Assembly: GCA_964035545.1 (NCBI GenBank)
Contig: OZ037769.1
Coordinates: 12,988,633-13,052,632, forward strand
DNA length: 64,000 bases
Source of the DNA: Bugula neritina
Lineage: Eukaryota > Animalia > Bryozoa
Direction: 5' to 3'
The notes beneath the pieces are model-generated. The model made no database searches. It was not told the origin of the DNA and saw only the letters and a program-made list of their open reading frames with translations. Each line of letters starts with the position of its first letter. Positions within the stretch are counted from its first letter, which is position 1. Positions 4,390-60,900 of the stretch are shown one piece after another. A program made the position numbers and the translations under genes.

Positions 4390-4892
4390 ATGGCGGACGA
4401 TGGAGAAGCCAGAGTAACTTTTGATCTTCTACCAGATGTAAGAATGCCTGCGTCCACTTTGTTCATATGTCAATGTCCTAATCTTACAAGCTTTGCTCTC
4501 TTGTAATGTTTATTTTTTGTGTGTGACCTATAATAAAATTTACAGCATTAGTACTTTTAGGTTTGGCTTCATTTTCATTGATATTACAGACAGATGTCTC
4601 TACTGCTACTCCCTCTCCAACAGCTGTTTCTCCTACTGATTCCACTCCCTTTCCAACAGCTGTTTCTTCTAATGAGTCCACTCCCCTACCAACAGCTGTT
4701 GCCTCAACTGACTCCACTCCCTCTGTGACTGCGGCTAGATCCACTGCAGAGCCTGACAGAGAGGAGAGAAGTGGGTGCTGCCGTGACTTTGACTCGGGCA
4801 GCTGCTGCATGAAGACCAGAGAGGTGGTTGAAAGCTCAAAGTTTAGTTTTATTTGTGGTGAGTCGCTCAACTGTACATCCCGCGTGTTATAA
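4390..4892 (+). CDS. Two 5' coding exons of an unknown gene (4390-4437; 4590-4857 or read-through to 4892), Ser/Thr/Pro-rich
   Basis: aaaATGGCG start gives MADDGEARVTFDLLPD, then donor gtaaga. Acceptor ttacag at 4589 is in frame with TDVSTATPSPTAVS..., with 3-4 copies of an 11-aa STPxPTAVSxxD repeat. Strong donor G|gtgagt after 4857, but no convincing downstream exon was found. Confidence 0.5.
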
Positions 4893-8095: not shown

Positions 8096-8977
8096 TTTTA
8101 TAAGCAGCATAATTATACAAAGAAAACTGATACATTATTTGATTCATTGAGAATGTATTAATGTTAAATAGCATTTTATAAATTCTACTAATGAATTTTA
8201 TTATTTATAAAATTAGCATCTGTAAAGTTGGTTGTGTTACGGCTACGAAGGTGACATATTGCAATATGTAATAGTGTCTTTGTCTAATGTTGCGTTTATA
8301 CCTACACGATTTTTAGTCAGAAATTCAATTTTGCCGGGTTTGCATTGCATTGGTAAAAACCACTCGTAAAAATGTTTGTATTGTGATAACTTAATGGGCC
8401 GATTTCAGAATAATACTCAAAAGGAGTAATAACTCCTTTTAAACATCGTTATTTAGTTATGACTTTGGCGATTGGATGACGTACTTATATGTTAATAATT
8501 AGATCGCCTACGCCTTCTCAATTGTCTTTTTTATGCTGTCAACTTCACTAATTCACTACGTTTTTAAAGGGCATCAAATAGCGATTAGACGAGTCAGATT
8601 TCATTTTTAGAAAGTAAGCTTCCACATCAATGTGATTTCACCGAGTTTCAGTTTGACTATAAAGGGGTAACTGAAACTCCGTACTTTTTTTCAGCAGAGG
8701 TATAAACGCAACTTAAGATTAACAAATGTAGTTAAGTACACCACACTTACCCTACATACTTATATGATAGGTATGTAGGGCTGACTTATACAATAAGGTA
8801 CATATGCTGACTTCTTTATAATAGTCTAGCTGACTTACAATAGGCCTGACTTTGATCATCCAGGCATTATCTCCCCATGCATCAGTTCTATTAGGTATTC
8901 TAATAATCCCAGCCTCTATTAGTCTGTGTGAATAAAATGATTAAATATTACCACTTCTCATAATTATGTTATTTATT

Positions 8978-16800: not shown

Positions 16801-19800
16801 TTTTGTTCTACCATCTCGTTTAGTGCTGTAAAGTCTACCCTTATCCAGCCCAAAACTAGAAGGGTAAAGCCTTTACTAAGTAACTGTGGAGGTTAGGAGT
16901 GTCATATAACAGTGCCATACCTACCAGCTGCCACACACTGTCCTATTTTCTACTCGTGGTACAGTTTGTCACGCAGCTGTCACATCTTAACTTGAAAAGG
17001 AAAATGGCAGAAAAATTGCTTTAACTGTATTTCATTGTTGAGGTTTTTTGCAGATATATTATGAAGAGCACATCTGTTATATTCATTGTTACAATATTTT
17101 AGAATAATGTTGCATTTGTAAGCTATAGAGACACGTTTTAAACTAATTGAGAAAATTCTACTGCCATCAAAATTCTTCCAATTGATTTTGAGTTAATCTT
17201 TGCAATACTATTATTCATTATTAGTCAGTTAAAGTTGAAGAAACAGACATTATAGCCATTAGCATAGAGTTTGTGATGTCATGTGCAAGTGTTTGTAATG
17301 TTTGTTCTGTTTGGTGTTGTAGCGCCACGCATCTTTGTCCTCGCCTACAATATGGTTAAGAACGTTCTGACTGCGCGGACAGCCGGAAAGATTCATATGC
17401 TGGGAAGTGAGTATTTGGAATAAAGGAAGATGATCTGATAGTCATTCATTGAGTGTTACTGTGAATATAAGTAGTTATTGTACTTGTACTTAAGGTAACT
17501 GGAAGGAATCTCTATTGGATGTGATGGATGCTGATCAACTTCCTGTGTATTATGGTGGTACGCAGGTGGATGAGAACGGAGACCCCAAGTGTCCCAATAA
17601 GGTTAGTACATAACCTACCACTACTTTTGTTTCTCTTTTTACTATTACATTATCTATTACTATTATACTCTCTATTACTATTGTTTCTTTTACTATTACA
17701 TTCTTTGACTGTTATTATTATACTCTCTTTTACTATTACATTCTTTTACTGTTACTATTATACTCTCTTTTACTATTACATTCTTTTACTGTTATTATTA
17801 TACTCTCTTTTACTATTACATTCTTTTACTGTTACTATTATACTCTCTTTTACTATTGTTTCTTTTACTATTACATTCTTTTACTGTTACATTCTCTATT
17901 ATTGTTTATTCTTTACCACTATTACACACTTCATTTCTGTTACGTTTTCTATTACTATTGTTTACACAATTTGTCTCATTTCCAGATACTACATATTATA
18001 TGATAGAAGTTGTCTTCTTTGTATAGATACTGTATAGTAGGAGTTGTCCTATTTTTACAGATACTGTATAGTAGGAGTTGTCCTATTTTTGCAGTTACTG
18101 TATGGTAGGAATTGTCCTATTTTTACAGATACTGTATAGTAGGAGTTGCCTCCTATTTTTGCAGTTACTGTATAGTAAAGGTTGTCTTATATTTGCAGAT
18201 ACTGTATAGTAGGAGTTGTCCTATTTTTACAGATACTGTATGGTAGGAGTTGTCCTGATTTTGCAGATACTGTATAGTAGGAGTTGCCCTATTTTACAGA
18301 TACTGTATGGTGGAGAGGTGCCAAAGACTTATTATTTTACCCACGATGATATCTCTGCCGATATGCAAACAGTGTATGTTTCTCGAGGTTCTACCAAGTA
18401 CATACAACTCCCGATCACTGTCAGCAAATGTCAAATTAGGTAAACTGACTCATTCACATCATCCTAGCAATCAGCACCTAACTACACAATACACAAGCAA
18501 AGGCTGTGTGGGTGAATAGTTTGTTGTGAAATATATGTGCCTGCTGTAAGACGCCTGCCTCACATTTGATATAGAAACTTCTTTATTTTAGTGGGTAGTC
18601 TATTTCAGTCTTTTTGCTATGAGTACACAACACTATGACTTGGTAGAAACGTTGCTTATAGTTTTGTGTTGTTTTATGGCAGTCCATATTTTACTACATT
18701 GTTTCTAGTTACTTCCCAGTTTCATATCATGTGCTTATAACAATACTATTACTTGAAACTTCGAGTCAGTACTTTTAGTATCAGTCAACTCGTAAAACTT
18801 GTAAAGCAACACAATTTGAATAAGAAGCGAGTTTTCTCATTTTTTAAAATAGCACACTTTGCATGTTCTGTTTTAGATACACAATACGATCTGAGAAACA
18901 TGATATAGGCTATGGTTTCCTATACAACGACTTGGATAGCCCGAGTAAACGCCATTCAGAGATGCAGGTAATTCTCAGCTCAACGAGAACCAACACCCAC
19001 ATGGTGCAGCTGACAGGCGTCCTGGAATGCAATCAGCCCGGTATTTGTAAGTTTTCAACTTTCATCATTTCATTTACTGTAGAATAGAGGAGTTTCAGAC
19101 ATCCCTCCAGAGTGGTTTGTATTTTAAAGTTGTCTTCCCCTACAGGTATTGGGGGCAGTCTCGATGATATATAGAAGGCCCATAAAATCAGTAGAAATGT
19201 AAGGTTTGAGTGAAGACTATTACTAGTATATGTTTCATTTTTTCCAAGATTGATATTTTGGCATAAGCACACATATGAGCAGTTTCAGAATTTTTTTAAA
19301 AAATTTTGTTATTGATAAATTTCAGAAAAAGAAAACTTCAGAGCATATTTGTGGTTTTGATTATTGAGCAAATCTGAAGCTGGCAGCTGTCATATTATCA
19401 TTTGTTTTGCTGGCTGTAACCAGCCTGTTTAGAGCTGCTATAACCTTTCAACTCTTAGGACAATAATAACTGCAATATAGCTGCACTAGTGGGCTCTGTC
19501 TTACTGAACTTCAAATGCTCCAAATTGTGGGTTGGAACACATGCCTGCACATGCCACATAAAGGCACTGGCTCATTTGTATTAACATGTTCACTACTTAC
19601 AACACTTATACTATGAAAACAACTAAGCCACCCTACTATCTAATATTTCTATCAAAAATAAAGATATGTATTAAAACAGATAGATTAAACTTGTAATTTT
19701 AAACAATATCTTATCTAAAAATTCCAAACACTGTATAACTATATATATGCTTTATAAGCATATGTTTCCATGGCATGCCTGCAAGACAATGAAAATATTT

Positions 19801-22800
19801 AGAGAACAGTAAAAAGAAGCATATAAATTTCAGAATAGTTTCTTTTTTCCTGAGATGAATATTATGGAAATGTCCCACAATTCAACATTTAAATTAAGTC
19901 TGTAAAATAATTTTCACAGTGTATTTTCAATAATTATTTTTGCAAGCTAGTTTGTGTTTGTTATAGTATGCCATTTTACAGTGGCTTAGTTAACTAGGTC
20001 AAAGTTCATTCAGCAGTGCAATGCAATTAACCCAACACACTTCCATTGTACACATTAGCAAACAAGTCATATAATAAGCTAGAAATCAGACAGAAACCTT
20101 ACGCAGCATTTAATTTTCTAAAATGGATACTAGCCAAACTAATAATTGCAACTTAGTGAAAGATGATCTGATTGCTTTAACAGAAGTTAAAACTTGGAAT
20201 ATTGAAGCTCTGAAAGACTTTTGCAGAAAAAGAGGTTACAAGATTACTGGTTCAAAGGACGAGCTTAGTGCTCGTGTATATTTTCTTTATAACAATCAAA
20301 TACCTGAAGAGCCTGGAGCAAAGCAGCAAGAAGCATCACGAAAAATAGATTACAAAACTCTACATAATGCTGTAGTCCCAACTATTGACCCAGCTAGGCT
20401 TAGTAAATGGATCAATGAGAAAGATGGTATTAGCCAGTGGCCACCAGTTTCTTATATAGAAATTGTACAATTTTTATTGAAACATGGTCAAAACTTGACA
20501 GCTGATGCTCTAACTACATATAAAACCGGAAAAGGATTTTCATATTTTTATAATGGATTCCTTCAAGAGGTGTTCTGTCATCCAATTAGAAAAGATAGTT
20601 CGGTGTGTTATCTAAAATCTACTTGCACTCCAAGCAATAGACTGAATGATACACCACACAACTTATGGACTAAAGTAGAAAAAAATTCAGGCACAATTCT
20701 TTCAGCATTCTGCTCTTGTGTAGCTGGGTAAGAAAAATAATATTTTGATCTTAAATACTAATTTATACATTTTTGTAGAAGCTTTAAAAAATAGACGAAG
20801 TTTATACTTTCAATTTTAGATTAAGCCAAACTTGCAATCACGTTGCTGCATTACTTTTCAAATTGAAAAGTGCATTCAGGCTGGAGCTATCGAGCCTTTC
20901 TTGTACAAGCACTGCATGTTCATGGAAAGCTCCTAAGTATGAAAAGGCGAAGCAGCTGTACATTCCAGTACAAGATATGGAATTTAACAAACCTCAATAT
21001 TGCAAAGGTAAACAAAATGTTGCAAGCTTTTGTAGTTTATAAGCAGTAGCTATTATAATATGTAATATTATATAATGTAATATTGTAAAAAATAATTTAG
21101 TATAAGTATGCATTGAGATTGTGTTATATAACATGAAATTGCTGATTTTCAGCTTGTTTTAAATTTTAATTGTTAAAATATGCATAATTACAATTTTTTT
21201 TATAAATATATGATTTGAACACTTGCATGATTATTTATAGGTACTAGCAGCAGACAAAGTCATACCCTTAAGACACAAGTTGAAGTAATGTGTAAAGAAG
21301 ATTTAGAAACTGTAAATGACACAGAAGAGTTTAAAAGTTTTGTTAGCAGTATGAAAAAGCTTTTACCCTCTGCTGTAATGTTTTTGCCAGGTAATATATA
21401 CTAATGAATGCAGGTTATTATTATTTTAGGCTACTCAACTTTTAAATGATTCCTCATAAGCCATATTACAGTGCTGCTTATATTAGGCTCTAGTAAACTG
21501 TTTCCATTACTACACTTGCAATAAGATAGATTATTTGATACAAGAATAGTTTTCATGGTATATAACAATGCTGATGTTGATAATATAGCCGCATATTTAC
21601 CAACAATTCTTTCACACGCACGGACAAGCATACACTATTTCAAAGAGTTCTAACCATGAACTTATTTTTTATAGGAAAAAAGAAAGCTCCAGAAACTATT
21701 CCTTTGCAGGAGACAAACTTAATAAGTATTGCATCTATTGCTAAGAGCTGTGGCACAGTAAAAGAGTTTCTACAGAAAATATCCCTGCCTGTAGTAGAAT
21801 TGAATAAAATAGAAAAGGAAACCAGGGGTCAAAGCGACAATGCTACATGGTATGAAGCTAGGAAAGGGCGAGTTACTGCTTCGAATTTCTATAGAGTGCA
21901 CACTAAAATACAAAGCATGAAAAAAACCCAAAAACTGATATCAGGGCTTTGTTAAAATCATTGATTGATCCACCAGTGCTAGGGCACCTTGATCAAATAT
22001 CTCATGGCTCGAAGAATGAGAAAACAGCTGTTAGTCATTTAGTGGTTTTGCTGACAGCTCAGGGGCACCACAATGTGTCTGTAACTCCTTGTGGCCTTTT
22101 CATACACCCAGACAAACAGTATTTAGGAGCAAGTCCTGATGGCATTGTTAGCTGCAGCTGCTGTTCAACTAGGCTACTGGAAGTGAAATGTCCAACAAAA
22201 CCAGTTGCTGAGCTAGCCTACTTAGAAAGCGATGGCTGTTTGAAAAAGAAGTCCTCATACTACGGTCAAGTTCAAGGCCAAATGTTGATAACAAACATGC
22301 AGGAATGCTACTTTTTTGTTTATGAAAGTGAAGCTTCAAATAGACTACAACTCATAACTTATGATGAACAGTTTAGTGACAGTTTAGAAGCTAGCCTTGA
22401 ATTATTCTATCATCAGTTTATGGCTCCACAACTACTTGGAAAAAAATTATAGTATCAACAGCAAGCGCTGTTAGGAATTATGGGGCATCATAGATGGTAC
22501 TATGATACATGTAATGGTATTTCCACAATATTGCACAAGCAGGACGAATTTCTTGAGTGATTAATCATTTACTATCTTATGCTTAATATAAAAATAATAT
22601 TCTTTTTCAAATTATTACGTATGCATGTAATCATTATAAATATAAAAGAAATAGATAAGATTTTTTTTAATTTTTTTATTATTGTTAGAGTAAGCTTTTC
22701 AAGTAATAGCAGCTTTTATTGCAAAAGAACTAAAGAAAGATGAGAAATATTATAATGTATTATAATATTGTGATTAATAAAATAAAAATAAAATATATTT

Positions 22801-25232
22801 TAAATGGCCCATCTATATACTTTCATCCCATTCTTTCACTATTGGACCTTGCATATTTGTAATAGCACAACAAATAGTCAAAATGTCATCGCACATTCGA
22901 ATTAATGAAACTGGGACAACATTGTTGATGAGCTTAAATGTTTTTATTCTTTGTATTACCCTTTCCACGTGGATTCGAACATTCGCTACCTTTTTAGTCT
23001 CTCCTATGTTTTTGGAGGTCATTTGTGTTCGACCTTTGAGTGGTGGGGGAACCACAAGCTCACAGCCTTTCATCATAACTGCTTCTTTCACTATTGAAAA
23101 ACCTCGATCAGCAAGCACCTGATCAGTGGGATTAAGATGTTTCAGAAATGAGCTGTTCAAAACAATGTGTTTGTCACTAGTTCTGCCTCCCCAAAGCTGT
23201 GACTTGTAAGCTACTGATCCTTGAGGAGTAATTGCTACTAAAAACTTGATGGTGTTATGGTGTTTGTAGTCACTCCATGTTGCAGATTGAAGTTTCAGAT
23301 CAGCGGGTTTTTGAATAAATATTTCACTGCAATCAATTATACATCTTAACTTTTTATAGTGCTTTTATTGAGGTGGAATTGTTCTCTTAACCTCCGTTTG
23401 TTGATAAAATGCTATCATTGGATTTAGAGCTTCTCCAAGCAACTTCACAGTCTGATTAAATATCTGCGATACCTGCCTAGTAGACAATCCAAACCTATAA
23501 AAAAACAATATACAAAATCCCTGTATTACATGTTTGGATGAAAAATAATGCAACAAATTGGCTAAAGCATGTTCAAGTAACATGAAACACTCGAAATATA
23601 AATAAGTCAAACTAGAGTTAGTCAACTGTGGGATGTTTTTTGGCCGATTTATATGTGCTGTTTAATCAGCTTATTATGTAATGATGTAATCCTATATAAT
23701 GTAATTCAAGTTAGACAGCTAAAGTTAGACAGTTCTCATTGTGCACTTTCTTGAACAAGCAGTTATGTAATATAGAGAGACAGCTAGTCAACAGAGAGCT
23801 TCAAGCAAACAAAATTCTTGCAACAAGGTTGATTGGATACACAACAACGGCTGTTATTCTCACAGCAGGATGCATTGTATAAGAGATAGCCTGATGTTCA
23901 CGTAGTTTACATACAGTGACATACCACTGAAAACTATTAGAAACCACAGAAAAGTTATAAAGGAGAGAACGCTGGCACAAAAGAAGTATAGCAATGTGAG
24001 CAAATATATGGCTGAAAACTGACCTAGAGATAAATAAGTACAAATTGTACATAATATAACTAAATCAGCAAAGCCAAATGATTTGATATAAAAAGTATTA
24101 TCTGGGAATTGTGGGAAATTTAGTAGCATTATTAAAAAGTTTACCTTTGAGCAAGATCCCTATGGAGTAAAGCCAATCTTAATTTCATTAGTGTCATAAG
24201 AATGCAGTCATTATGACATAGTGCGGTCTTTCTATACTTCACAGCTGGTACGAAATGTACATTTTTAACTTTTCTTTTGGAAACAAGCCAAGTTGCTCTA
24301 GCTAAAAATTGCTTGTTTTTTTGATAATTTTTTTTCTGCAATGCAGCAGTATATTTACAAAGCTCCAAAAACATTTCTGTATTAGGAATGTTAGTATAAA
24401 ATTTGCACATTCTATCTGTTTTTAGAAGTTGTTTGTATATAGGAGAAAGTAGCTTCGCTAAATGTTTGGATGCTTTCTTTAGCTCCATGAGCTTGACAAA
24501 ATATTTGCCTTTTAGAAGCCTTAGTTCTTTTTCAGCTTTCATCAACTTTAATGGCAAAGCGTTTACATCATCATCATTCTCATTCAAGCTTCCAATAGAC
24601 AATTGCTTATTTTTATCCTGCTTAGGTTGAGATTTTTTAGCCCTAGCATACTCTGAGACATCAAATATTTCCGATTCTTCTGTTAATTCGGAATCCAACA
24701 CACTTTTTGTTTGGCAAGTTGAGATTAAGGTAACAGAGGTATTGGGCAATTCTGTACTACTAGCCATTGTTGATGTTCTAGTGGCACGTTTGGTGGAGTG
24801 AGTATTATAAAGAGCATAGCCTAATTCCAATGTAGGATTTGGGTGACTCTCTGTTGGCATATTGTCAACAAAATGTTTACTGCAGATTACTGACTCATTA
24901 TTAGGCTGCCAAGGAGTTGTATCTGTTTTGCTCATTTGTCTGTTGATTAATTTAGACCATATCCTTTTGTTCTTTTCATCTTCCGGGAACTTGAAATGCT
25001 TGAAGGGTAGACATCCACATTTTCCTTAAAGTGGAATAAAACAAGATATATGTATGATATAATATTACACTGTAGAGCATATTATGTTGTACATAGAAGA
25101 TAACATATTGCAGAACACAATATACCCATATTGCAAAGCATCAGAGTTGATAAGTAAGTAACTAAACAAAATTGTATAACTGTGTGTGTGCACTCGAGTA
25201 TACACACACACATATATATATCTATACATATG

Positions 25233-25327
<95 letters not shown>

Positions 25328-27581
25328 ACACATGCATACACATACAAGTGCACACAGAAATTTACCTCATTAAACACAAAGCCTTATTGTTACATCTACT
25401 TGTTATTAATGTAATATATTTATTATCAACCAAGCATGTCTACACTAACATTGCATGATATTCTACTAAAGGATTATATGCCAGCTGAACATACTTGTAA
25501 CAAAGCTAGTTAAGTTCGTTTCCATAATCAAATATGAATAAAATAATGATTTATTTACCCTTGAGTTTATGATGAACTGAACAAAGCTCTTTTTTGGACT
25601 GTAGTAGTTTTTTTGAATTGTTTGTACATAGGTATGCAGAGCAAGCACGGTTAGGCATTGCTGTTTGATGCTATACCAACTGAACAAGTTTTTACAAATT
25701 CCTAAAGTATGGGCAGCTGGTGCCACATTACACCGGAATTAAACTTTGACCTGTTTGCTAATGTGTACAATGGAAGTGTGTTGGGTTAATTGCACTGCAC
25801 TGCTGAATGAACTTTGACCTAGTTAACTAAGCCACTGTAAAATGACATACCATAACAAACACAAACTAGCTTGCAAAAATAATTATTTATTGAAAATACA
25901 CTGTGAAAATTATTTTACAGACTTAATTTAAATGTTGAATTGTGGGACATTTCCATAATATTCATCTCAGGAAAAAAGAAACTATTCTGAAATTTATATG
26001 CTTCTTTTTACTGTTCTCTAAATATTTTCATTGTCTTGCAGGCATGCCATGGAAACATATGCTTATAAAGCATATATATAGTTATACAGTGTTTGGAATT
26101 TTTAGATAAGATATTGTTTAAAATTACAAGTTTAATCTATCTGTTTTAATACATATCTTTATTTTTGATAGAAATATTAGATAGTAGGGTGGCTTAGTTA
26201 TTTTCATAGTATAAGTGTTGTAAGTAGTGAACATGTTAATACAAATGAGTCAGTGCCTTTATGTGGCATGTGCAGGCATGTGTTCCAACCCACAATTTGG
26301 AGCATTTGAAGTTCAGTAAGACAGAGCCCACTAGTGCAGCTATATAGCGTAGGAGCATGTTATTATTGTCCTAAGAGTTGAAAGGTTATAGCAGCTCTAA
26401 ACAGGCTGGTTACAGCCAGCAAAACAAATGATAATATGACAGCTGCCAGCTTCAGATTTGCTCAATAATCAAAACCACAAATATGCTTTGAAGTTTTCTT
26501 TTTCTGAAATTTATCAATAACAAAATTTTTTAAAAAAATTCTGAAACTGCTCATATGTGTGCTTATGCCAAAATATCAATCTCAGAAAAAATGAAACATA
26601 TACTAGTAATAGTCTTCACTCAAACCTTACATTTCTACTGATTTTATGGGCCTTCTATATATCATCGAGACTGCCCCCAATACCTGTAGGGGAAGACAAC
26701 TTTAAAATACAAACCACTCTGGAGGAATGTCTGAAACTCCTCTATTGTCTTCCCTACTGAATGTTTGATATTACTCCGGTAGTTGGATTATAAGAATATT
26801 ACTCTGCTAGCTGCCATTGCTGCTTGAATAGACCCTTTTCAGAGGTCTCCAATGTCCCTCTTGCGATTAAGAGTTGTGTCCTCGCAAAATGAAAATTGTT
26901 GAACAAAATAAACTTGTACTCATTTTTGTGGTTTTGGTTACTGAGCATATTCGAAACTTCAGCGCTGAAATATTTTAGTTGATAACACTTTGGTTTATGT
27001 CTTCGGCTAAAGATTTCACTTATGAGTCATCTCCCAACATGTTACATCCTCTGTGTACTAAAACTAGTACAGCAATGTACACCTGTCTGTCTGCTGGTGC
27101 ATACAGCTGTCTGTCTGTTGGTGCATACACCTACCTGTCTGTTGGTGCATACACCTACCTGTCTGTTGGTACATACACCTACCTGTCTGTTGGTACATAC
27201 AGCTGCTGTCTGTTGGTGCATACAGCTGCTGTCTGTTGGTACATGCAGCTACCTGTCTGTTGGTACATACAGCTGCCTGTCTGTTGGTACATACAGCTGC
27301 CGTCTGATGATGTTTATAGCTGCCGTTTGTCAATTTATATAGCTGCCACTGTTTGTCTGTCGAGCTGCCAATGCTAGTTTTTCTACTTTGTAGACATTCT
27401 GCTGCTGGACAATTCATTTAGTTGGATCAAAGGTAAGACTGTGCGCTACTCTTTAGAGGTAGTTGCTCCCAAGACAGAAGACGAGGCGTATACAGATGCT
27501 CTAGATGTCATTGGAGATGACTGTGTAAATTTCACTGCAAATGAGACTGAAGACCTCAGTGGACACGAGGAGGCTCACTGA
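13841..27581 (+). CDS. SEC14L2: SEC14-like lipid-binding protein, SEC14L2/3/4 type (CRAL-TRIO + GOLD), 422 aa, 12 exons: 13841-13885, 14335-14416, 14574-14617, 14745-14901, 15590-15684, 15928-16003, 16651-16731, 17323-17406, 17495-17601, 18300-18439, 18877-19046, 27394-27581
   Basis: GT-AG exon chain of 1269 nt, in frame. Motifs [80 protein letters not shown] and [18 protein letters not shown]. The symbol denotes the subfamily, not proven orthology. Confidence 0.93.
16036..16221 (+). mobile_element. tRNA-derived SINE, copy 1
   Basis: A-box-like tggtctagggg, B-box ggttcaaacc, core ggccattggtgatgttaggaagagcatccagtcata and tail cagggatggtgactataa. Closely matches 52189-52373. Confidence 0.8.
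17625..17960. repeat. Degenerate T-rich tandem repeat (ttttactattacattc / tactgttattattatactctc)
   Basis: Visible repeated units. Explains the spurious Leu/Tyr-rich ORF 17528-18037. Confidence 0.85.
18003..18316 (+). repeat. 33-36-bp tandem array of the SEC14-like exon-10 splice acceptor (~9 copies)
   Basis: Unit ttgtcctatttttrcag|atactgtatrgtaggag. AGs end at 18026, 18060, 18094, 18128, 18164, 18198, 18232, 18266 and 18299 (the last is the inferred functional one). Confidence 0.9.
19086..20069 (+). repeat. Left terminal inverted repeat (984 bp)
   Basis: Reverse complement of 25747-26743, with about ten substitutions and two small indels counted by eye. ORFs 19033-19272(-) and 26557-26760(+) are mirror images. 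Confidence 0.95.
20123..22452 (+). pseudogene. Transposon accessory gene: SAP + SWIM Zn finger + YqaJ/lambda-type exonuclease (~573 aa if repaired; exons 20123-20727, 20820-21007, 21241-21390, 21675-22452), one frameshift
   Basis: [31 protein letters not shown]; SWIM CSCVAGLSQTCNH spanning intron 1; YqaJ motifs TRGQS..W...[30 protein letters not shown]. The A7 run at 21920-21926 needs one more A to read [18 protein letters not shown]. Confidence 0.88.
22813..25658 (-). pseudogene. THAP + HTH + DDE (DDE_Tnp_4-type) transposase (~553 aa; exons 25658-25559, 25024-24145, 23494-22813), one in-frame TAA
   Basis: [17 protein letters not shown]...FKFPED...IWSKLINR...WQP...ICSKHF; [34 protein letters not shown]; catalytic [20 protein letters not shown]; also [12 protein letters not shown] and WGGRTSD. 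Spliced length 1662 nt. TAA at 23367-23365 lies just before the first catalytic Asp. Confidence 0.92.
25238..25324. repeat. (TA)n microsatellite within transposase intron 1
   Basis: Directly visible dinucleotide run. Confidence 0.95.
25747..26743 (-). repeat. Right terminal inverted repeat (997 bp)
   Basis: Reverse complement of 19086-20069. It is 13 bp longer because of a 4-bp tatt duplication near 25886 and a 13-for-4 replacement near 26346-26358. Confidence 0.95.
27078..27305. repeat. 21-24-bp minisatellite (tacacctacctgtctgttggtrca)
   Basis: About 9-10 visible units in the last SEC14-like intron. Explains ORFs 26979-27417. Confidence 0.9.
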
Positions 27582-30885: not shown

Positions 30886-33800
30886 ATGATTAGGTCATGG
30901 ATGATGAAATACCCCCTGATCACAGGTACCTGCCTAAGTATTCTAATTATAGTTGTGGTGTATGTCTGTACAAAATAATTATATCTACTAGTGTTACATT
31001 ATACTCAATCTGATACTTGTAAATCAGCTTGTAACTCAAAAGCATATAATACACCGTATGTAGCTCCTTTTATTTTGTAGGTATATATTACCTTGTGTGT
31101 AGGTAGTCCTTTGTATCTTCTAGGTATATATTGCCTTGCAGTGTAGCTAATATTTTGGTATAATGTAGGTATATCTTACACAGTAGTATAATATATACCT
31201 GGCCTATTGTAGTGATATGATGCGCTGTAGTGTAATATATTGTAGGTATATAGTGCAATATATTGTAGGTATATAGTGTAATATATTGTAGGTATATAGT
31301 GTAATATATTATAGGTATATAGTGTAATATATTGCAGGTATATAGTGTAATATATTGTAGGTATATAGTGTAATATATTGTAGGTATATAGTGTAATATA
31401 ATATTGTAGGTATATAGTGTAATATATTGTAGGTATACAGTGTAATATATTGTAGGTATATAGTGTAATATATTGTAGGTATATAGTGTAATATATTGTA
31501 GGTATATAGTGTAATATATTGTAGGTATATAGTGTAATATATTGTAGGTATATAGTGTAATATATTGTAGGTATATAATGTAATATATTGTAGGTATATA
31601 GTGTAATATATTATAGGTATATAGTATAATATATTGTAGGTATATAGTGTAATATATTGTGGGTATATAGTGTAATATATTGTAGGTATATAGTGTAATA
31701 TATTGTAAGTATATAGTGTAATATATTGCAGGTATATAGTGTAATATATTATAGGTATATAGTGTAATATATTATAGGTATATAGTGTAATATATTGTAG
31801 GTATATAGTGTAATATATTGCAGGTATATAGTGTAATATATTGCAGGTATATAGTGTAATATATTATAGGTATATAGTGTAATATATTATAGGTATATAG
31901 TGTAATATATTGCAGGTATATAGTGTAATATATTATAGGTATATAGTGTAATATATTGTAGGTATATAGTGTAATATATTATAGGTATATAGTGTAATAT
32001 ATTATAGGTATATAGTGTAATATATTGTAGGTATATAGTGTAATATATTATAGGTATATAGTGTAATATATTGCAGGTATATAGTGTAATATATTGTAGG
32101 TATATAGTGTAATATATTGTAGGTATATAGTGTAATATATTATAGGTATATAGTGTAATATATTGTAGGTATATAGTGTAATATATTGTAGGTATATAGT
32201 GTAATATATTGTAGGTATATAGTGTAATATATTGTAGGTATATAGTGTAATATATTGCAGGTATATAGTGTAATATATTGTAGGTATATAGTGTAATATA
32301 TTGCAGGTATATAGTGTAATATATTATAGGTATATAGTGTAATATATTGTAGGTATATAGTGTAATATATTATAGGTATATAGTGTAATATATTGTAGGT
32401 ATATAGTGTAATATATTATAGGTATATAGTGTAATATATTGCAGGTATATAGTGTAATATATTGTAGGTATATAGTGTAATATATTGCAGGTATATAGTG
32501 TAATATATTGTAGGTATATAGTGTAATATATTGTAGGTATATAGTGTAATATATTGCAGGTATATAGTGTAATATATTGTAGGTATATAGTGTAATATAT
32601 TGCAGGTATATAGTGTAATATATTGTAGGTATATAGTGTAATATATTGTAGGTATATAGTGTAATATATTGCAGGTATATAGTGTAATATATTATAGGTA
32701 TATAGTGTAATATATTATAGGTATATAGTGTAATATATTGTAGGTATATAGTGTAATATATTGTAGGTATATAGTGTAATATATTGCAGGTATATAGTGT
32801 AATATATTATAGGTATATAGTGTAATATATTGTAGGTATATAGTGTAATATATTGCAGGTATATAGTGTAATATATTATAGGTATATAGTGTAATATATT
32901 GCAGGTATATAGTGTAATATATTATAGGTATATAGTGTAATATATTGTAGGTATATAGTGTAATATATTGTAGGTATATAGTGTAATATATTGCAGGTAT
33001 ATAGTGTAATATATTATAGGTATATAGTGTAATATATTGCAGGTATATAGTGTAATATATTATAGGTATATAGTGTAATATATTGTAGGTATATAGTGTA
33101 ATATATTGTAGGTATATAGTGTAATATATTGCAGGTATATAGTGTAATATATTGTAGGTATATAGTGTAATATATTATAGGTATGGTGTCATACGGTGGA
33201 GTATGGACAGCCTCCAGTATAACCCAACAGAAGTTCATATCTAAACATGAAGTAGATTTTGTGGTAATCTTTTACAGTTATTCATTCTAGTTAGTAGTTT
33301 CATATCACCACAGCTCAATATGTTAGGTTATGGAAGTAAAAAGATTAAGAAATTATAAATTCGACTTTTATTTTGATCCAAAATTTCAAATATCGGCATC
33401 AGTGATGGCAATTATCTGTGTTGAGTGTGATTAAGCTTACGCTGCAGCTGATGGTGTAGATTTATAATGAAAAATGTTATTTATGTTTATTTTTCGCCAC
33501 CAAATAACCTGATTTATACTAACAATTTCTCCTAAAAGCATCTTCGTGGAGTATAAATGTTTATAGGCTTATTGATATAGGTTGCTGCATGTATCAAAAT
33601 ACACCCATGTTGAGTATTGTTTATAGTAATATATAAATGGAAATACAAAATATATCATCAGTCTACTCAGTTGTAAAAAATATTTTTGAAAAATAAAATT
33701 AGAACATTATTTAAATTTCAATTCAAACTGTGCTGTTGGTCTCTATTGATAGGCTGTAAGGAGAAATACGACGGTGGCAGTATTTGTCATAGCTCCCCTA

Positions 33801-41528: not shown

Positions 41529-44500
41529 ATGGAGATGTCCAACGCTGCCAATGCTGCCTCCAGGTCCAGTCTGACCATAGAGAGACACTATGTACCTCGG
41601 ACAGCACCTCGTGTAACTAGGACTAGCACGCTGGATAGCCAAGAAGATAGTGGCCCCGGAATACCTACTAGCAGGTACTCGCCCTCTGTGAAGAGACAGT
41701 TACCTAGTCCCGGGCCATCTTCTGTCAACTCCCATTCGCCGAATGGTTACGTAGCAGACTACTCTGTATCAGAGGTAAGTATATTGTATACTGTAATACA
41801 ACATACTACATCAGAGGTAAGTATATTATATACTGTAATACAACATACTACTCTGTATCAGAGGTAAGTATATTATATACTGCAATACAACATACTACAT
41901 CAGAGGTAAGTATTAATGCCAGAACCAAGTACTAGTCAAGTATATATGAACGTGTAGCTCATTTTCCTTGCTACTTGTAAATACTGAAAATTCAATGAAC
42001 TTCAAACAAAATTCATAATTGCAACATATTTTTTTCTGCAGGTTTCCTCTCTTACCGGCAGCATTTCTTCTATGCCAAGGCGGCAGCACCTCGACCCCTC
42101 CCAGCTGCCGTATTCTAGCAGGTATATTCCTGAGAGTGGAGACTCTGGTATGTACAGTGCCAGGGTCCGGGGATATCCCAGTTCCGTTTCCACTTACGCC
42201 GACACTGATATAGACTCTGTTACGGGAGATCAGGAAAGTCGGTATAAAGGTGAACTTTTCCAGCCAAACATGGCGCCTACAGCTGCCCCTAGAATATCGC
42301 AAAAAGATGTTAGACAAATGTATGGCGAGGTACATCCTAAAAACTTACTCCCAAAGGATTTGCCGACGCCCTCTAGTGGCGACGAACTCGAAACAATGAG
42401 TGACGCATCCATTCCCTCATTTACAGACGTACCTCGAGCTCGACCACGCGCCAGCCTTCGTAGAAAGAAGCTGGCTCAAATAAACAGCGGGTTCCTAAGT
42501 GATGACGACGCGAGTGTATCTAGTCAACTGGACAGATCTAAATCTCTGCCCAGAGGTATTCTTAAAAATAACTCGACTGATATATCGGATGCGGAGTCAC
42601 TCGCGACGGGTAGTAACTTCAAACGGACGCTGAGTGGCCGCACGGTCCGGTTTCAGCACAACGACAAGGCCAGGACTATCGCTAAGAAGGTCATAGACTA
42701 CGACAAGCTGGACAGAGAGGCTGACAGCGCAGACGGCAGCTCAAAGAAAAAGAAAAACAAAACCAGCAGCAGCTCGGATCCCTTCTCTGTGATGAAGCCT
42801 GTCGGCATCAAACCGGCTAGAAATGACCCTAAAAGGTCGTCTAGTCGAAGCAGTCAGCGAGGCAGCAAACAAGGGCGACAATCACGATCTTCCTCCAGAG
42901 ACAGGTCCAGGTAAACACTAATGAAATTTCATCACTTATACTTGTTTGTAAATAAGTTGGGGAAATACAATATAAGTTAGTGGAGTATAATAGCGGTAGG
43001 CATAAATGGGTGAAGGTTTCCTCAGCTTTGTGGTGGTTTCCAATTAGAAGTTCTAAACCTGCAGCTCTAAGAACCTGCGGAGCTTCTTTGTCGAGAGTTT
43101 CTAGTGCCGCTGAGGCCAGAAGCTCTAGATTCTAGAATGTTCACACAGTCATAGTGAACTATTCTGTTAGCCAAATGTAAAATGGGGGTTAGAAAAGTTT
43201 GGTACCTAATTTCGTACTTCTACACTTTTTACTTGTTTTATAAAAAAACTGAAACTTTTATTATCTTTGGACTTTCAAGACTTCAAGTCTTTGGACTTGT
43301 ACAATTTTGGAAATAAATTCACATTAACATTAGTCCTACAACTGGAAACACTGCAAGACAATCAGCTTAAACCTTTACTGAAAATGTGAGAATATAAATA
43401 TCTATGTTTGATAAAGAATTAAATAGAAATGCTATAGTTATTCTTGTAATGATATATAGATTTTTAATTGTTAATTCTCTTTATTTTTCAAACATTTTTT
43501 TACCAACTATATATCATTATATCAGAATTATTCTTTCTAGTTAATTTCATTATTCCTATGGTAAAAAGTAATGCATAGTATGCAGTGATAATGCATAAAT
43601 ATTCTATATGAAATGTCACGAGTAAATGTAGTTGCTGTTGTAAGAAAAGCTAACATTATAGAGCATGAAAAATGTCTAAAAGTTACACAATGTTTATTGC
43701 CTTTTTAGCTCAGGGGTTTTGGTCACTGTTTTTCATGTGACCCCTATATAATATTATATATACCTGATCATGTCGGAGTTGAATGTTGTATGCATTCAAA
43801 AGGGTATAAATATGGTGATTAGATTTGAAAAGCCATAAACTTTAATTATGTAACAATCAAATGATTTTATGACCCACAGAAAAGTTAGTAAATTTAGTGT
43901 CACCCTGGAACTTTAAAGCATACTCTCAGTCCGACTGTCACTAGTGACTAATATGACTCAACTTGACTATTAACAATCCATTTAGATATTTGTTTATCGT
44001 TTCATAAACAAACCATAACTGACTCACATTTAACCTGAATTTATGAGATTACAAGCTGTAAATCTTCAAGAAACCTTAGCTGAAGCAGAGGTTGTGGTGT
44101 TACTCTGAGATTTTCATTCTAAAATAGCATCTATAAAAGAAATTGATAGGAGTTTTATAGAGCTTAGGCTACATTAGCTTACAATTCCCACTTGTTTCTA
44201 ACTGCTTGGAACTTGCATAATTATTACATTTGGGAATCAGGGCTCAAAGTATATCAATTGAATGTCACATATTTTAGACATGGTTCCATGAACAGAGGGC
44301 AACGTGCGGGGTCGGGGAGAGGCCGATCTTCCTCAGTAGACAGCAAGAAGCGTTCTTCATTGGCGGAGAGATCAAAGAAGGAACCATCAGTATCCGTGAG
44401 TGGAGAAGATGTGAAGATAGATGTAAGTGGAATATAGCACATAATATAATATACACTGCGTTTCCATTACTTCGCATTATGCGAATCAATGCTGTACATT

Positions 44501-51947: not shown

Positions 51948-54900
51948 ATGCCGCATAACCATAAGAATGACACGGCAGGAAGTGAAACTTCTTCCCTCTC
52001 TGAAGCTGCTCCTAGTGAGATTGTCGACAGCGTGCCTGAGGCAGCAGTAGAGGACTCCGTGTCAATGCTAGGTCGATACGTGACTGTAGGAATCCTAACA
52101 CTAGTAAACCTTCTCAACTATATGGACAGACTCACAATAGCTGGTGAGTATCCTGAGATTAGCTCCTAATATCCACTCTTAACGATTTGAGAGCAGCCGT
52201 GGTCTAGGGGTTAGTAAGCATGAAGTTATGGGTTCGAACCCGCCAAGGGCCATTGGTGATGTTAGGAAGAGCATTCAGTCATATTTGTTCCTTTGTCACA
52301 TCTGAATAAATCCTTTGCCCGATTTAACAAAAACCTCTTCCATCAGGGGCTCTCACAGGGATCGTGACTATAAAATCATATGAGTTTTTATCTGCGCCCA
52401 ATTGCTCTGCTACACAACCTTTACTAGTATTTGCTCTACTGCAGTCTTTTAAACATTTTCTGAGGATTTTTATAAATAATTTGTAGCGCTGCTTAGGCTA
52501 TGTTTTTGTCACCTTTTTAAATTAATCAGTTTTAGTCGTTGGCAATGTGAGGTTGAAAATGTACTAAGTGCAGTCACTAAAAGACGTCATGGGTATTTGG
52601 ATTTTCACTTCATGTAATATAACTATCAACTTACAACCTATAACATAGTTTCTCATGTGGTATTCTGGTATTGGTTGTGTAAGAGGCAGGGTAATGTTTC
52701 GCTATATTATCAACTCTTGCAGGTGTGCTCGGGAAAGTGGAGACGTTCTATGACATCAAAGATGCCCAGGCTGGCTTGTTACAGGCTATATTCATTGTTG
52801 GTTATATGATATTCTCTCCTATATTTGGTTACTGTGGTGACCGGTACAGCAGGAAGTACTTGATGCTTGGCGGTATTGCATTCTGGTCCGTAGTGACTCT
52901 TGCTGGATCATTTGTACCTCGCGGGGTAAAGTATATGCATATTTAGTAGTTCTAGTAGAGAATGGGTAGTGTGTCTGTCCTTGTATCACCATACATATAG
53001 TTTAACTATGTTACTTCCAGTAACTATATCACTGTACATTGTTACAACTACAATACACTATGATATATTATATGTATCAAATGAGTTATGTTGCTATTTT
53101 GTAAATAACCGAATGTGCTTTGCTGAGTTTTTGTGATTTGGTGGGTAAAATATAGCCCACCCCACTATTGTTGGATTTTAAAATTGAAACGTTGCTTTTT
53201 TCTCAGCAAAATCAACATTTACTTTTTTGATGTCATTAAACTGATTGGGAGTTGTCTGATCACTGTTAGTAAATGTATTTCTAGCAACAGGTGCGAGAAT
53301 TCTCAATAATGGACGAAACGTAATTTAGTGTAAAGTGATGTTATATAATGTGTCTGACATCATTATAGCATATATGAACCAAGTATTTACTCTGTTATAA
53401 CCTACTGCAGGGCACGTGTGTTGTCATGTCATAACCTATACTGCAGGGTACATGTGTTGTCATGTCATAACCTACTGCAGGGCACATGCGTTGTCATGTC
53501 ATAACCTATACTGCAGGGTACATGTGTTGTCATGTCATAACCTACTGCAGGGCACATGTGTTGTCATGTCATAACCTACTGCAGGGCACATGTGTTGTCA
53601 TGTCATAACCTACTGCAGGGCACATGTGTTGTCATGTCATAACCTACTGCAGGGCACATGTATTGTCATGTCATAACCCACTGCAGGGCATATGTGTTGT
53701 CATGTCATAACCTACTGCAGGGCACATGTGTGATCATGTCATAACCTACTGCAGGGCACATGTGTTTTCATGTCATAACCTACTGTAGGGCACATGTTTG
53801 GTCATGTCATAACCTACTGCAGGGCACATGTGTTGTCATGTCATAACCTATACTGCAGGGTACATGTGTGGTCATGTCATAACCTACTGCAGGGCACATG
53901 TGTTGTCATGTCATAACCTACTGTAGGGCACATGTGTTGTCATGTCATAACCTACTGCAGAGCACATGTGTGATCATGTCATAAAATACTGCAGGGCACA
54001 TGTATGATCATGTCATAACCTACTGCAGGGCACATGTGTTGTCATGTCTTAACCCACTGCAGGGCACATGTCTGGTCATGCCATAACCCACTGCAGGGCA
54101 CATGTGTGGTCATGTTGTTTGTTGTTATTGTTCAGCCTCAACTTTTGACTTTGACTGACTGATACTTGGATATGTTCAGAGTCTAATTTAGTAAATAATT
54201 ATATCTTATCTTATAGTTTATCTTCACCCTAATAATTATTGAACATTCAGTAATATACAGTGTGCTAATACATTGTAGTATGTAGTATACAGTGTGCTAG
54301 TACATTGTAGTATGTAGTATACAGTGTGCTAGTACATTGTAGTATGTAGTATACAGTGTGCTAGTACATTGTAGTATGTAGTGTACAGTGTGCTAGTACA
54401 TTGTAGTATGTAGTATACAGTGTGCTAGTACATTGTAGTATGTAGTGTACAGTGTGCTAGTACATTGTAGTATGTAGTATATAGTGTGCTAATACATTGT
54501 AGTATGTAGTATACATTGTGCTAGTACATTATAGTATGTACTATACAGTGTGGTAATACATTGTAGTATGTAGTATACAGTGTGCTAGTACATTGTAGTA
54601 TGTATTATACAGTGTGCTAGTACATTGTAGCATGTAGTGTACAGTGTGCTAGTACATTGTAGTATGTAGTATATAGTGTGCTAATACATTGTAGTATGTA
54701 GTATACAGTGTGCTAGTACATTGTAGTATGTATTATACAGTGTGCTAGTACATTGTAGCATGTAGTATACAGTGTGCTAGTACATTGTAGTATGTAGTAT
54801 ACAGTGTGCTAGTACATTGTAGTATGTAGTATACATTGTGCTAGTACATTGTAGTATGTAGTATACAGTGTGCTAATACATTGGTATCTACATCATACTA

Positions 54901-57900: not shown

Positions 57901-60900
57901 GTTCTGTGTAGCTGTGGGTCTACCCGCAGTTTACCATCAGTTTACCACAACCCTCTAGACACACTTTGCCGTAACGTCAACGGTACCGTTAAATGTCAGC
58001 CATTTTTAAAAATATCCGAGCTTCCTGTACGACGTTACGGTACTTCAGGATCAAACACTGCTTGATTAGAAAAATTGCTTTGGGCTCCTATTGGACAGGA
58101 AGATGTTCGTGTGAACTCATAGAATATAAATGTCCAATGAGGTGTCATAAATCTTACCCAATAGCGGACTTTGAGAACTTCAGCCCGAACACATTAAAAA
58201 TGGCCGACATTTTACGTTACGGCCTATGTTGTAGCAAAGTGTGTGCTATGTATTTACTCTATTGTACTATTGTTCTATTGTATGTACTTGGTTTGTACTT
58301 CTATACAATTACTATGTACTTCTCTATGCTGACTATAATTCACTATATACTTACGCTATATATTTACTATATACTCACACTATGCACTTATTATATACTT
58401 ACACTATACACTTACTATATACTTACACTATACACCTACTATCTACTTAGTGCTCTATATTGCAGAGTGTCCTTCTACTTTGGTCTGCTGACATGCGGCT
58501 CAGGTTTCTTCGGTATACTGATTGGCTCCAACCTGGCGTACCTGGTGAAGAAGAGATTCCCCAGCGGAGACGCTCTCGTCTGTGCGTTTGGTCTCATTGG
58601 ATCCTCCGTGTTCCTCTACTTCACTATCCTGCTTCTGGAATATTCCATACCTGCTGCGTGGGTCAGTGCTTCTTATACACATTTCTCTGTTGGCTGGAAT
58701 TAGAAATAACCTGCTGAGCTAATTCTAAATTATAATTTTCCTAGGAGAACTGTGACAGACTCGAGTATATTTTTTAGAATATAGAATTGACCAGTTGTGT
58801 TTAATTTTATAATAGGAATAAAATAATTTTGCTGTCCTAAACGCAACGACTTTAAATGCCATAGACTAATAAATTTTAACAATAAGTCATAGTGGTTAAC
58901 TGATTATCAAGAGTAATTTTGATTATCATTTACCTCTTCTCTTGTTTCACATCTCTTCTATACTCTAAGGTCTACTACTAGATCTCATTATGTATCATTA
59001 TTCTGATTCATCTATTGTTTCAGGCGACAATGTTTCTCGGCATGACAATGGTGTGTCTCAATTGGTCTCTCACAGCTGACATAGTCCTAGTAAGTAGTAT
59101 ATAGTCCTAGTGAGTAGTATATAGTCCTAGTAAGTAGTATATAGTCCTAGTAAGTAGTATATAGTCCTAGTAAGTAGTATATAGTCCTAGTAAGTAGTAT
59201 ATAGTCTTAGTAAGTAGTATATAGTCCTAGTAAGTAGTATTTAGTCCTAGTAAGTAGTATATAGTCATAGTAAGTAATATATAGTCCTAGTAAGTAGTAT
59301 ATAGTCCTAGTAAGTAGTATATAGTCCTAGTGAGTAGTATATAGTCCTAGTAAGTAGTATTTAGTCCTAGTAAGTAGTGTATAGTCCTAGTGAGTAGTAT
59401 ATAGTCCTAGTGAGTAGTGTATAGTCCTAGTAAGTAGTGTATAGTCCTAGTAAGCAGTGTATAGTCCTAGTAAGTAGTATATAGTCCTAGTAAGTAGTGT
59501 ATAGTCTTAGTAAGTAGTATATAGTCCTAGTGAGTAGTGTATAGTCCTAGTAAGTAGTATATAGTCCTAGTAAGTAGTACATAGTCCTAGTAAGTAGTGT
59601 ATAGTCCTAGTGAGTAGTATATAGTCCTAGTAAGTAGTACATAGTCCTAGTAAGTAGTGTATAGTCCTAGTGAGTAGTACACAGTCCTAGTGAGTAGTAT
59701 ATAGTCCTGGTAAGTAGTATATAGTCCTAGTGAGTAGTATAGAGTCCTAGTAAGTAGTATATAGTCCTAGTAAGTAGTATATAGTCCTAGTAAGTAGTAT
59801 ATAGTCTTAGTAAGTAGTATATAGTCCTAGTAAGTAATATATAGTCCTAGTAAGTAGTATATAGTCCTAGTGAGTAGTATATAGTCCTAGTAAGTAGTAT
59901 TTAGTCCTAGTAAGTAGTGTATAGTCCTAGTAAGTAATATATAGTCCTAGTAAGTAGTATATAGTCCTAGTAAGTAGTATATAGTCTTAGTAAGTAGTAG
60001 ATAGTCCTAGTAAGTAATATATAGTCCTAGTAAGTAGTGTATAGTTCTAGTAAGTAGTGTACAGTCCTAGTAAGTAGTATATAGTCCTAGTAAGTAGTAT
60101 ATAGTCCTAGTGAGTAGTGTATAGTCCTAGTAAGTAGTGTATAGTCCTAGTAAGTAGTGTATAGTCCTAGTAAGTAGTATATAGTCCTAGTAAGTAGTAT
60201 ATAGTCTTAGTAAGTAGTATATAGTCCTAGTAAGTAATATATAGTCCTAGTAAGTAGTATATAGTCCTAGTAAGTAGTATATAGTCCTAGTAAGTAGTGT
60301 ATAGTCCTAGTGAGTAGTATATAGTCCTAGTAAGTAGTATATAGTCCTAGTAAGTAGTATATAGTCCTAGTAAGTAATATATAGTCCTAGTAAGTAGTAT
60401 ATAGTCCTAGTAAGTAGTGTATAGTCCTAGTAAATAGTATATAGTCCTAGTGAGTAGTATATAGTCCTAGTAAGTAATATATAGTCCTAGTAAGTAATAT
60501 ATAGTCCTAGTAAGTAGTATATAGTCCTAGTAAGTAGTATATAGTCCTAGTAAGTAGTGTATAGTCCTAGTAAGTAGTATATAGTCCTAGTAAGTAGTAC
60601 ATAGTCCTAGTAAGTAGTATATAGTCCTAGTGTGTAGTATATAGTCCTAGTAAGTAGTATATAGTCATAGTAAGTAGTATATAGTCCTAGTGAGCAGTAT
60701 ATAGTCCTAGTACGCAGTATACATACTATATTGTTTCTAGTACACAGTTATACCTACAAGAAGGTCCACAGCCGAAGCCATGCAGATTTTCATCGGCCAC
60801 CTGCTGGGAGATGCCGGAAGTCCGTACCTTCTGGGACTAGTAAGTCTAGCTCTCTATTATATTCACTGTCTTGCAGTTTTATCTCTCTTTAGTCATATCT

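Follow-up and report, generated by a model that had tools for sequence, protein, structure and literature searches.

The segment from 19086 to 26743 of the window, the 64,000-nucleotide stretch of Bugula neritina DNA that was analysed, very probably represents a recent insertion, since rendered defective, of an autonomous ISL2EU DNA transposon (PHIS superfamily) that has few copies in its 216-Mb animal genome. The kilobase-long terminal inverted repeats (TIRs, or arms) of this element are a trait of its whole family (family A, the window family), since each of the three coding copies has them, as does an abundant non-autonomous derivative of 2.87 kb. That long TIRs characterize the lineage had been suggested from the window copy, and when other copies were checked, arms of ~1 kb recurred rather than short ones.

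Both ends of the element proper were checked base by base, which gives a length of 7,658 bp. At the left junction, gtaga is followed by AT (19084–19085) and then by AGAGGAGTTTCAGA, and at the right junction, TCTGAAACTCCTCT extends up to 26743 and is followed by AT (26744–26745) and then by tgtc. The base before the left AT is A19083 and the base after the right AT is T26746, corresponding to the target A|AT|T. AT is present on both flanks in all 19 window-family copies examined, with T as the next base in all 19 and A as the previous base in 18. A comparison with empty sites was provided by L033, a deletion derivative inserted in an unnamed repeat, unfilled paralogues of which exist in the window at 8461–8600 (reverse strand) and at L030. 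In both paralogues, a single AT lies exactly at the L033 junction. This proves that the 2-bp AT of an A|AT|T target is duplicated, and it fixes the termini of the window family as AGAGG...CCTCT. The size of 7,658 bp and the bounding AT given in the earlier note are therefore confirmed, and the duplication claimed there is now proven through the paralogous empty sites.

ISL2EU elements are defined by a THAP/HTH/DDE transposase, by YqaJ in a second open reading frame and by duplication of the AT of A|AT|T (PMC4482050, PMC4122938). The window element encodes a THAP-HTH-DDE_Tnp_4 transposase, carries YqaJ as its second gene and is bounded by a 2-bp AT duplication in A|AT|T. By its predicted architecture, target-site duplication and target, rather than by a tree, the element is assigned to ISL2EU; the domains, the second gene and the duplication with its target all agree with this identity, which had been proposed at the outset. 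Two other groups were considered and rejected. Spy, the sister of the ISL2EU clade, has one gene, lacks THAP and inserts between AAA and TTT with no duplication, whereas the window element has an AT duplication, two genes and a THAP domain. PIF/Harbinger elements, which form a separate group, duplicate 3 bp (TWA) and encode a Myb/SANT partner, whereas the duplication of the window element is the 2-bp AT and the partner is YqaJ.

The two genes of the element converge. Their exon models are predictions from sequence, with GT-AG introns and closing phases; the Pfam and protein searches were run exon by exon, and the joined frames served only for frame closure and substitution counts. The predicted exonuclease gene begins with the ATG at 20123 on the forward strand, 54 bp inward of the left arm, and its three exons encode 523 aa (last coding base 22449). 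Exon 1 (20123–20727, GT donor at 20728) encodes a SAP domain. A SWIM-like CxC...CxH motif is interrupted by intron 1, so that its CxC lies in exon 1 and its CxH in exon 2 (20820–21007), the frame of which closes in the three-exon model. Exon 3 (21675–22452, stop at 22450–22452) encodes the YqaJ/lambda-exonuclease domain, in which D...E.K is kept. Pfam searches of the plus strand yielded SAP with an E-value of 1e-5 (slightly below the cut-off), YqaJ with 56.6 bits and Viral_alk_exo with 49 bits. Additionally, the SPDG...E.KCP catalytic motif falls in register when the YqaJ exon is aligned to the solved structures of lambda exonuclease (1avq) and LHK-Exo (3syy).

The predicted transposase gene, on the reverse strand, begins with the ATG at 25658, 89 bp inward of the right arm, and its three exons encode 553 aa. 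Exon 1 (25559–25658, GT donor at 25558) carries the C-x4-C start of the THAP domain. The C-terminal remainder of THAP, with FP...W...CxxH, is encoded by exon 2 (24145–25024), where it is followed by a linker and the N-terminal half of HTH_Tnp_4. Exon 3 (22813–23494, coding as far as 22816) contributes the remaining half of HTH_Tnp_4 and the entire DDE_Tnp_4. On the minus strand, Pfam assigns 30 bits to THAP (cut-off 23.9) and 162.8 bits to DDE_Tnp_4 over the full profile; an intron divides HTH_Tnp_4 into two weak halves that abut across the splice. The models are least certain at transposase exon 1, because the modelled spacing of 69 residues from the C-x4-C to the CxxH of THAP is above the canonical spacing, and this exon or its donor may be mis-set. 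Intron 1 contains a (TA)n/(CA)n microsatellite (25172–25364), the length of which differs among copies. An AT-rich spacer of 360 bp with AATAAA/ATTAAA on both strands (22453–22812) separates the converging stops (22452 and 22813), and the spacing of both ATGs and of both stops is as previously described.

Protein searches of the whole assembly identified only three coding copies, which are located on C5, C6 (L031) and C3 (L032) and are ~98–98.5% alike; the C6 copy is reversed relative to the window. The window copy had been taken as intact, which does not hold for either gene. In the exonuclease, the loss of one A near 21919 causes a frameshift at codon 347 of 523, as revealed by comparison with L031 and L032, both of which are open over all 523 codons. 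In the transposase, a premature TAA is present at 23367–23365 (codon 370 of 553), where L031 and L032 have TAT (Tyr). With both predicted frames broken, the window copy is judged to be dead. The transposases of the other two copies are also disrupted: L031 has a 1-bp deletion at codon 390, and L032 has a 4-bp deletion at codons 499–500, immediately before the catalytic Glu. A 1-bp insertion of L032 at 23498 was discounted as a lesion, being intronic in the exon model. No intact transposase of the window family is present in the assembly, and each coding copy carries one private lesion of this gene, which implies that each was intact at insertion. The pN/pS values among the three copies range from 0.36 to 0.65 but are based on 5–20 differences per pair, which are too few to use. 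A gene call from a JGI metagenome contig (P0001) is 98% identical, and its exon 3 is open across the lesion sites of both the window copy and L031. The closest foreign relatives besides this gene call (P0002–P0050) show 56–70% identity, and the closest database proteins are unnamed.

The repeat search of the window returned inverted repeats at 19083–20069 and 25747–26746 in three gapless blocks of 97–99% identity. The left arm (19086–20069, forward, beginning with AGAGGAGTTTCAGA) is 984 bp long and the right arm (25747–26743, reverse) is 997 bp long, and together they make up 25.9% of the element. The two arms differ at 12 of 987 aligned positions (98.8% identity) and by one 10-bp and one 4-bp indel; the values given in the earlier note (984/997 bp, about 99% identity by eye and about 26% of the element) are borne out by these measurements. 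The left arm contains four TTTCAGA motifs in a single orientation. No sharply conserved terminal block was found along the arm, conservation between autonomous and non-autonomous elements being roughly uniform at 82–98%.

Among 25 catalogued ISL2EU families, the TIRs range from 6 to 259 bp with a median of about 14, and the element lengths reach 7,117 bp with a mean of 4.84 kb (PMC4482050). The element in the window resembles ISL2EU in having both genes, the A|AT|T target and an animal host, and its proteins of 553 and 523 aa fall inside the published ranges of 426–576 and 200–647 aa (PMC4122938, PMC4482050). In contrast, the TIRs of the window family (984–999 bp) are about four times as long as the longest in the catalogue, although the range of the survey is descriptive and not defining; the suspicion that they exceed those of described ISL2EU elements was correct (PMC4482050). 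The element is also longer (7.66 kb versus the mean of 4.84 kb), and its terminus is AG instead of the usual GG. TIRs of PIF/Harbinger, in the same PHIS superfamily, reach 1,042 bp (PMC4482050), which indicates that TIRs of kilobase length are not new to the superfamily, whereas none is described for ISL2EU in the literature examined (PMC4122938, PMC4482050). A literature search for a link between YqaJ transposons and long TIRs found none.

A search of the 216-Mb genome with the arm gave 369 candidate matches, 40 of which were scored, so that the copy numbers are lower bounds. Twenty loci were sampled: the three coding copies, three deletion derivatives (L033–L035), one interrupted solo arm (L036) and 13 complete non-autonomous elements. 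The latter are 2.83–2.87 kb long and have arms of ~895 bp that are 96.9–99.3% identical within an element, and TIR accounts for 62% of the 2.87-kb derivative, which is a further difference from described ISL2EU elements in being foldback-like. Their interior of ~1 kb matches the central part of the transposase gene (23364–24401 of the window) at 91% identity, and their arms are 88–89% identical to the autonomous arms by BLAST. L033 and L034 share an internal deletion junction that joins arm position ~505 to element position 4469, and they are 14 Mb apart with separate flanks and AT duplications. The same junction at two loci indicates that the half-arm element was mobilised at least once. A derivative that retains just the outer ~510 bp of one arm therefore still transposed.

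Two other readings of the long arms were considered and rejected. Nothing was found in favour of a single rearrangement or a local misassembly as the source of the kilobase repeat, and this reading can be dismissed almost completely: dozens of insertions spread over nine chromosomes have the same arms, in each case with different flanking DNA and a separate AT duplication. A composite transposon, in which two inverted copies of an independent ~1-kb mobile element captured both genes, might be suggested by the non-autonomous elements, which are mostly arm, and by the apparently solo, interrupted arm at L036. However, the arm is not itself bounded by inverted termini, as its inner end is unrelated to the outer AGAGGAG; all derivatives keep both outer ends, with deletions that are internal; and the interior of the non-autonomous elements is a piece of the transposase gene. 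A composite origin is consequently very unlikely.

Whether the long arms serve the genes is best considered together with a second family. Other ISL2EU families in the genome show 38% (YqaJ) and 43–45% (DDE) amino-acid identity to the window family. At five loci or more, these families have their two genes, for the transposase and the exonuclease, in a head-to-head arrangement, with the 3' ends toward the ends of the element; sister family B (L056–L059) is one of them. The arms of family B were found with a 1.4-kb query taken downstream of one exonuclease gene, which gave a second, inverted match per copy (query 351–1398). An example is the pair C8:2186268-2187315(-) and C8:2194455-2195502(+), which are ~100% identical and delimit an element of ~9.24 kb; the arm length of at least 1,048 bp is a lower bound set by the query end, and the ends are taken from the coordinates. 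A total of 398 candidate arm matches were obtained, and family B has its own abundant derivatives of ~2 kb, which are mostly arm. The two families are thus alike in their two-gene ISL2EU content, in long and nearly identical TIRs and in mostly-arm derivatives, whereas they differ in gene layout (divergent in family B, convergent in the window) and in arm sequence, for which similarity between the families was looked for and none was found.

Maize MuDR, a member of the MULE superfamily with TIRs of ~215 bp and a 9-bp duplication, has TIR promoters that were demonstrated experimentally. Like MuDR, the window element has two convergent genes that each begin beside a long TIR; unlike MuDR, it belongs to the PHIS superfamily, with TIRs of ~1 kb and a 2-bp duplication. 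By analogy, the duplicated 1-kb TIR was proposed to act as one shared promoter that co-expresses both convergent genes, which would account for the length of the arms. The geometry is compatible with this proposal: between either ATG and the adjacent TIR, there is just a spacer of 54 or 89 bp, and since nothing else lies upstream inside the element, any element-borne promoter would be in or abutting the arm. However, the left and right spacers are unrelated, and the only TATA-like box (20070–20078) starts one base outside the repeat, with none in the right-hand spacer. Additionally, the genes of family B run outward, so that its arms lie 3' of both genes. Kilobase-long, near-identical arms in two deeply diverged families with opposite gene layouts argue against a promoter role as the explanation of arm length. 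The proposal, weakened by the outward genes of family B, by the position of the TATA-like box and by the half-arm derivative that transposed, is possible but on balance doubtful. Arm length instead appears to characterize the ISL2EU lineages of this host rather than to follow from the convergent layout.

The two arms evolve in concert, that is, they are homogenised, in which the window family also differs from described ISL2EU elements. Between the autonomous and non-autonomous arms, 44 substitutions that separate the lineages are present in both arms, and two are near-fixed and arm-specific, which bears out the homogenisation of long repeats suggested in the earlier note. The arms of L031 are 99.8–99.9% alike, compared with a difference of ~2% between copies. 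In the non-autonomous elements, the identity of the arms within an element (97.85%) is greater than that between elements (96.45%). When the window copy is compared with L031 and L032, the outermost ~150 bp of its two arms share seven variant sites at mirrored positions, and the deeper variants are private to the left arm, a pattern that resembles a conversion tract.

These observations fit a model in which the family would move by DDE cut-and-paste with a 2-nt staggered cut of the target, the THAP domain would recognize subterminal sites, and the non-autonomous copies would be mobilised in trans. The identity of the arms would be maintained because inverted repeats lying so close together undergo gene conversion, not because transposition requires it, as the derivative with the outer ~510 bp of one arm moved.

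The role of the YqaJ exonuclease beside the ISL2EU transposase is still unknown (PMC4482050). The YqaJ 5'-3' exonuclease of the element may itself drive the homogenisation of the arms, for example by producing single strands that form a panhandle in which mismatches are corrected. The homogenised arms, the retention of the lambda-exonuclease catalytic motif and the presence of YqaJ in both long-TIR families are in line with this idea. However, nearly all catalogued YqaJ-bearing ISL2EU families have TIRs of 6–148 bp (PMC4482050), which indicates that YqaJ is insufficient for long arms and that the idea is not specific. Furthermore, the excess of within-element over between-element arm identity is also observed in the gene-less non-autonomous copies, and host gene conversion between nearby inverted repeats suffices for the data. 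A role of the exonuclease in homogenisation is accordingly considered unlikely, and conversion between neighbouring inverted arms is retained as the model.

Kilobase TIRs also occur outside the PHIS superfamily: Galileo, an element with a P-type transposase, has long TIRs and a foldback-like structure, and mostly-arm derivatives occur among such elements as well. For annotation, the window copy would be recorded as a pseudogene pair, and the foldback-like derivatives of ~2.9 kb constitute a sizeable repeat class that can confound assembly and gene calling.

The two-family long-TIR system is of somewhat higher interest than the window copy itself. A more speculative view, considered unlikely, is that the ISL2EU transposons of this bryozoan-like host form at least one long-TIR lineage in which an element-linked mechanism keeps the kilobase arms identical whichever the gene orientation, for example through an exonuclease-made panhandle corrected in the manner of an adenovirus/AAV ITR. 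If true, such upkeep of the arms would provide the first testable role for the YqaJ protein, which is conserved beside the ISL2EU transposase although its function is unexplained. Two distant ISL2EU families with opposite layouts, in both of which the ~1-kb arms evolve in concert, in addition to shortened-arm derivatives that moved, form a compact natural system that addresses the function of long TIRs, the homogenisation of inverted arms and the participation of the exonuclease.

Each arm of the window element carries four copies of the heptamer TTTCAGA, all in the same orientation, which lie at 19095-19101, 19285-19291, 19322-19328 and 19830-19836 in the left arm and at mirrored sites in the right arm. 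Four copies were reached in 0 of 20,000 shuffles, for a heptamer that was picked post hoc, and three of the four sites are kept in the non-autonomous family, whose arms are 88-89% identical to the autonomous arms. TTTCAGA is a candidate subterminal motif that the transposase may bind.

A second ISL2EU family (L056-L059) is present at C8:2186268-2195502 of the same assembly and at four more loci, and its proteins share 38% (YqaJ) and 43-45% (DDE) amino-acid identity with those of the window family. The inverted arms of this family measure 1,048 bp or more and are near-identical to each other, and its genes are divergent, whereas those of the window family are convergent. The copies of this second family are 99.3-99.5% identical, and numerous ~2-kb derivatives (398 candidate matches) consist largely of arm sequence.

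Minisatellites are plentiful in the window, with six arrays recorded: 31228-33184 (23 bp x85), which explains why GC skew is so strong between 30 and 34 kb, 59081-60721 (20 bp x82), 53393-54115 (34 bp x21), 54250-54883 (32 bp x20), 18004-18315 (34 bp x9) and 27078-27306 (24 bp x10). The transposon is bracketed by two smaller arrays, one per side, each within ~1 kb. Additionally, an open frame of 280 aa rich in Ser, Arg and Lys (42072-42914, + strand) probably represents a host-gene exon.

A dispersed repeat without a name has copies at window 8321-8600 (- strand) and at positions 620-930 of locus L030, and these provide the empty-site paralogues for the insertion of L033, a deletion derivative on C2. 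Two arm copies are interrupted by other, nested repeats, of ~0.78 kb in L036 (1317-2094) and ~1.1 kb in L048 (358-1457). An older relative of the window family's exonuclease gene (L060, C4:19001612-19005046) exhibits 83-87% DNA identity and many stops throughout, and this relative shows that the window family has resided in the genome for longer than its three young copies suggest.
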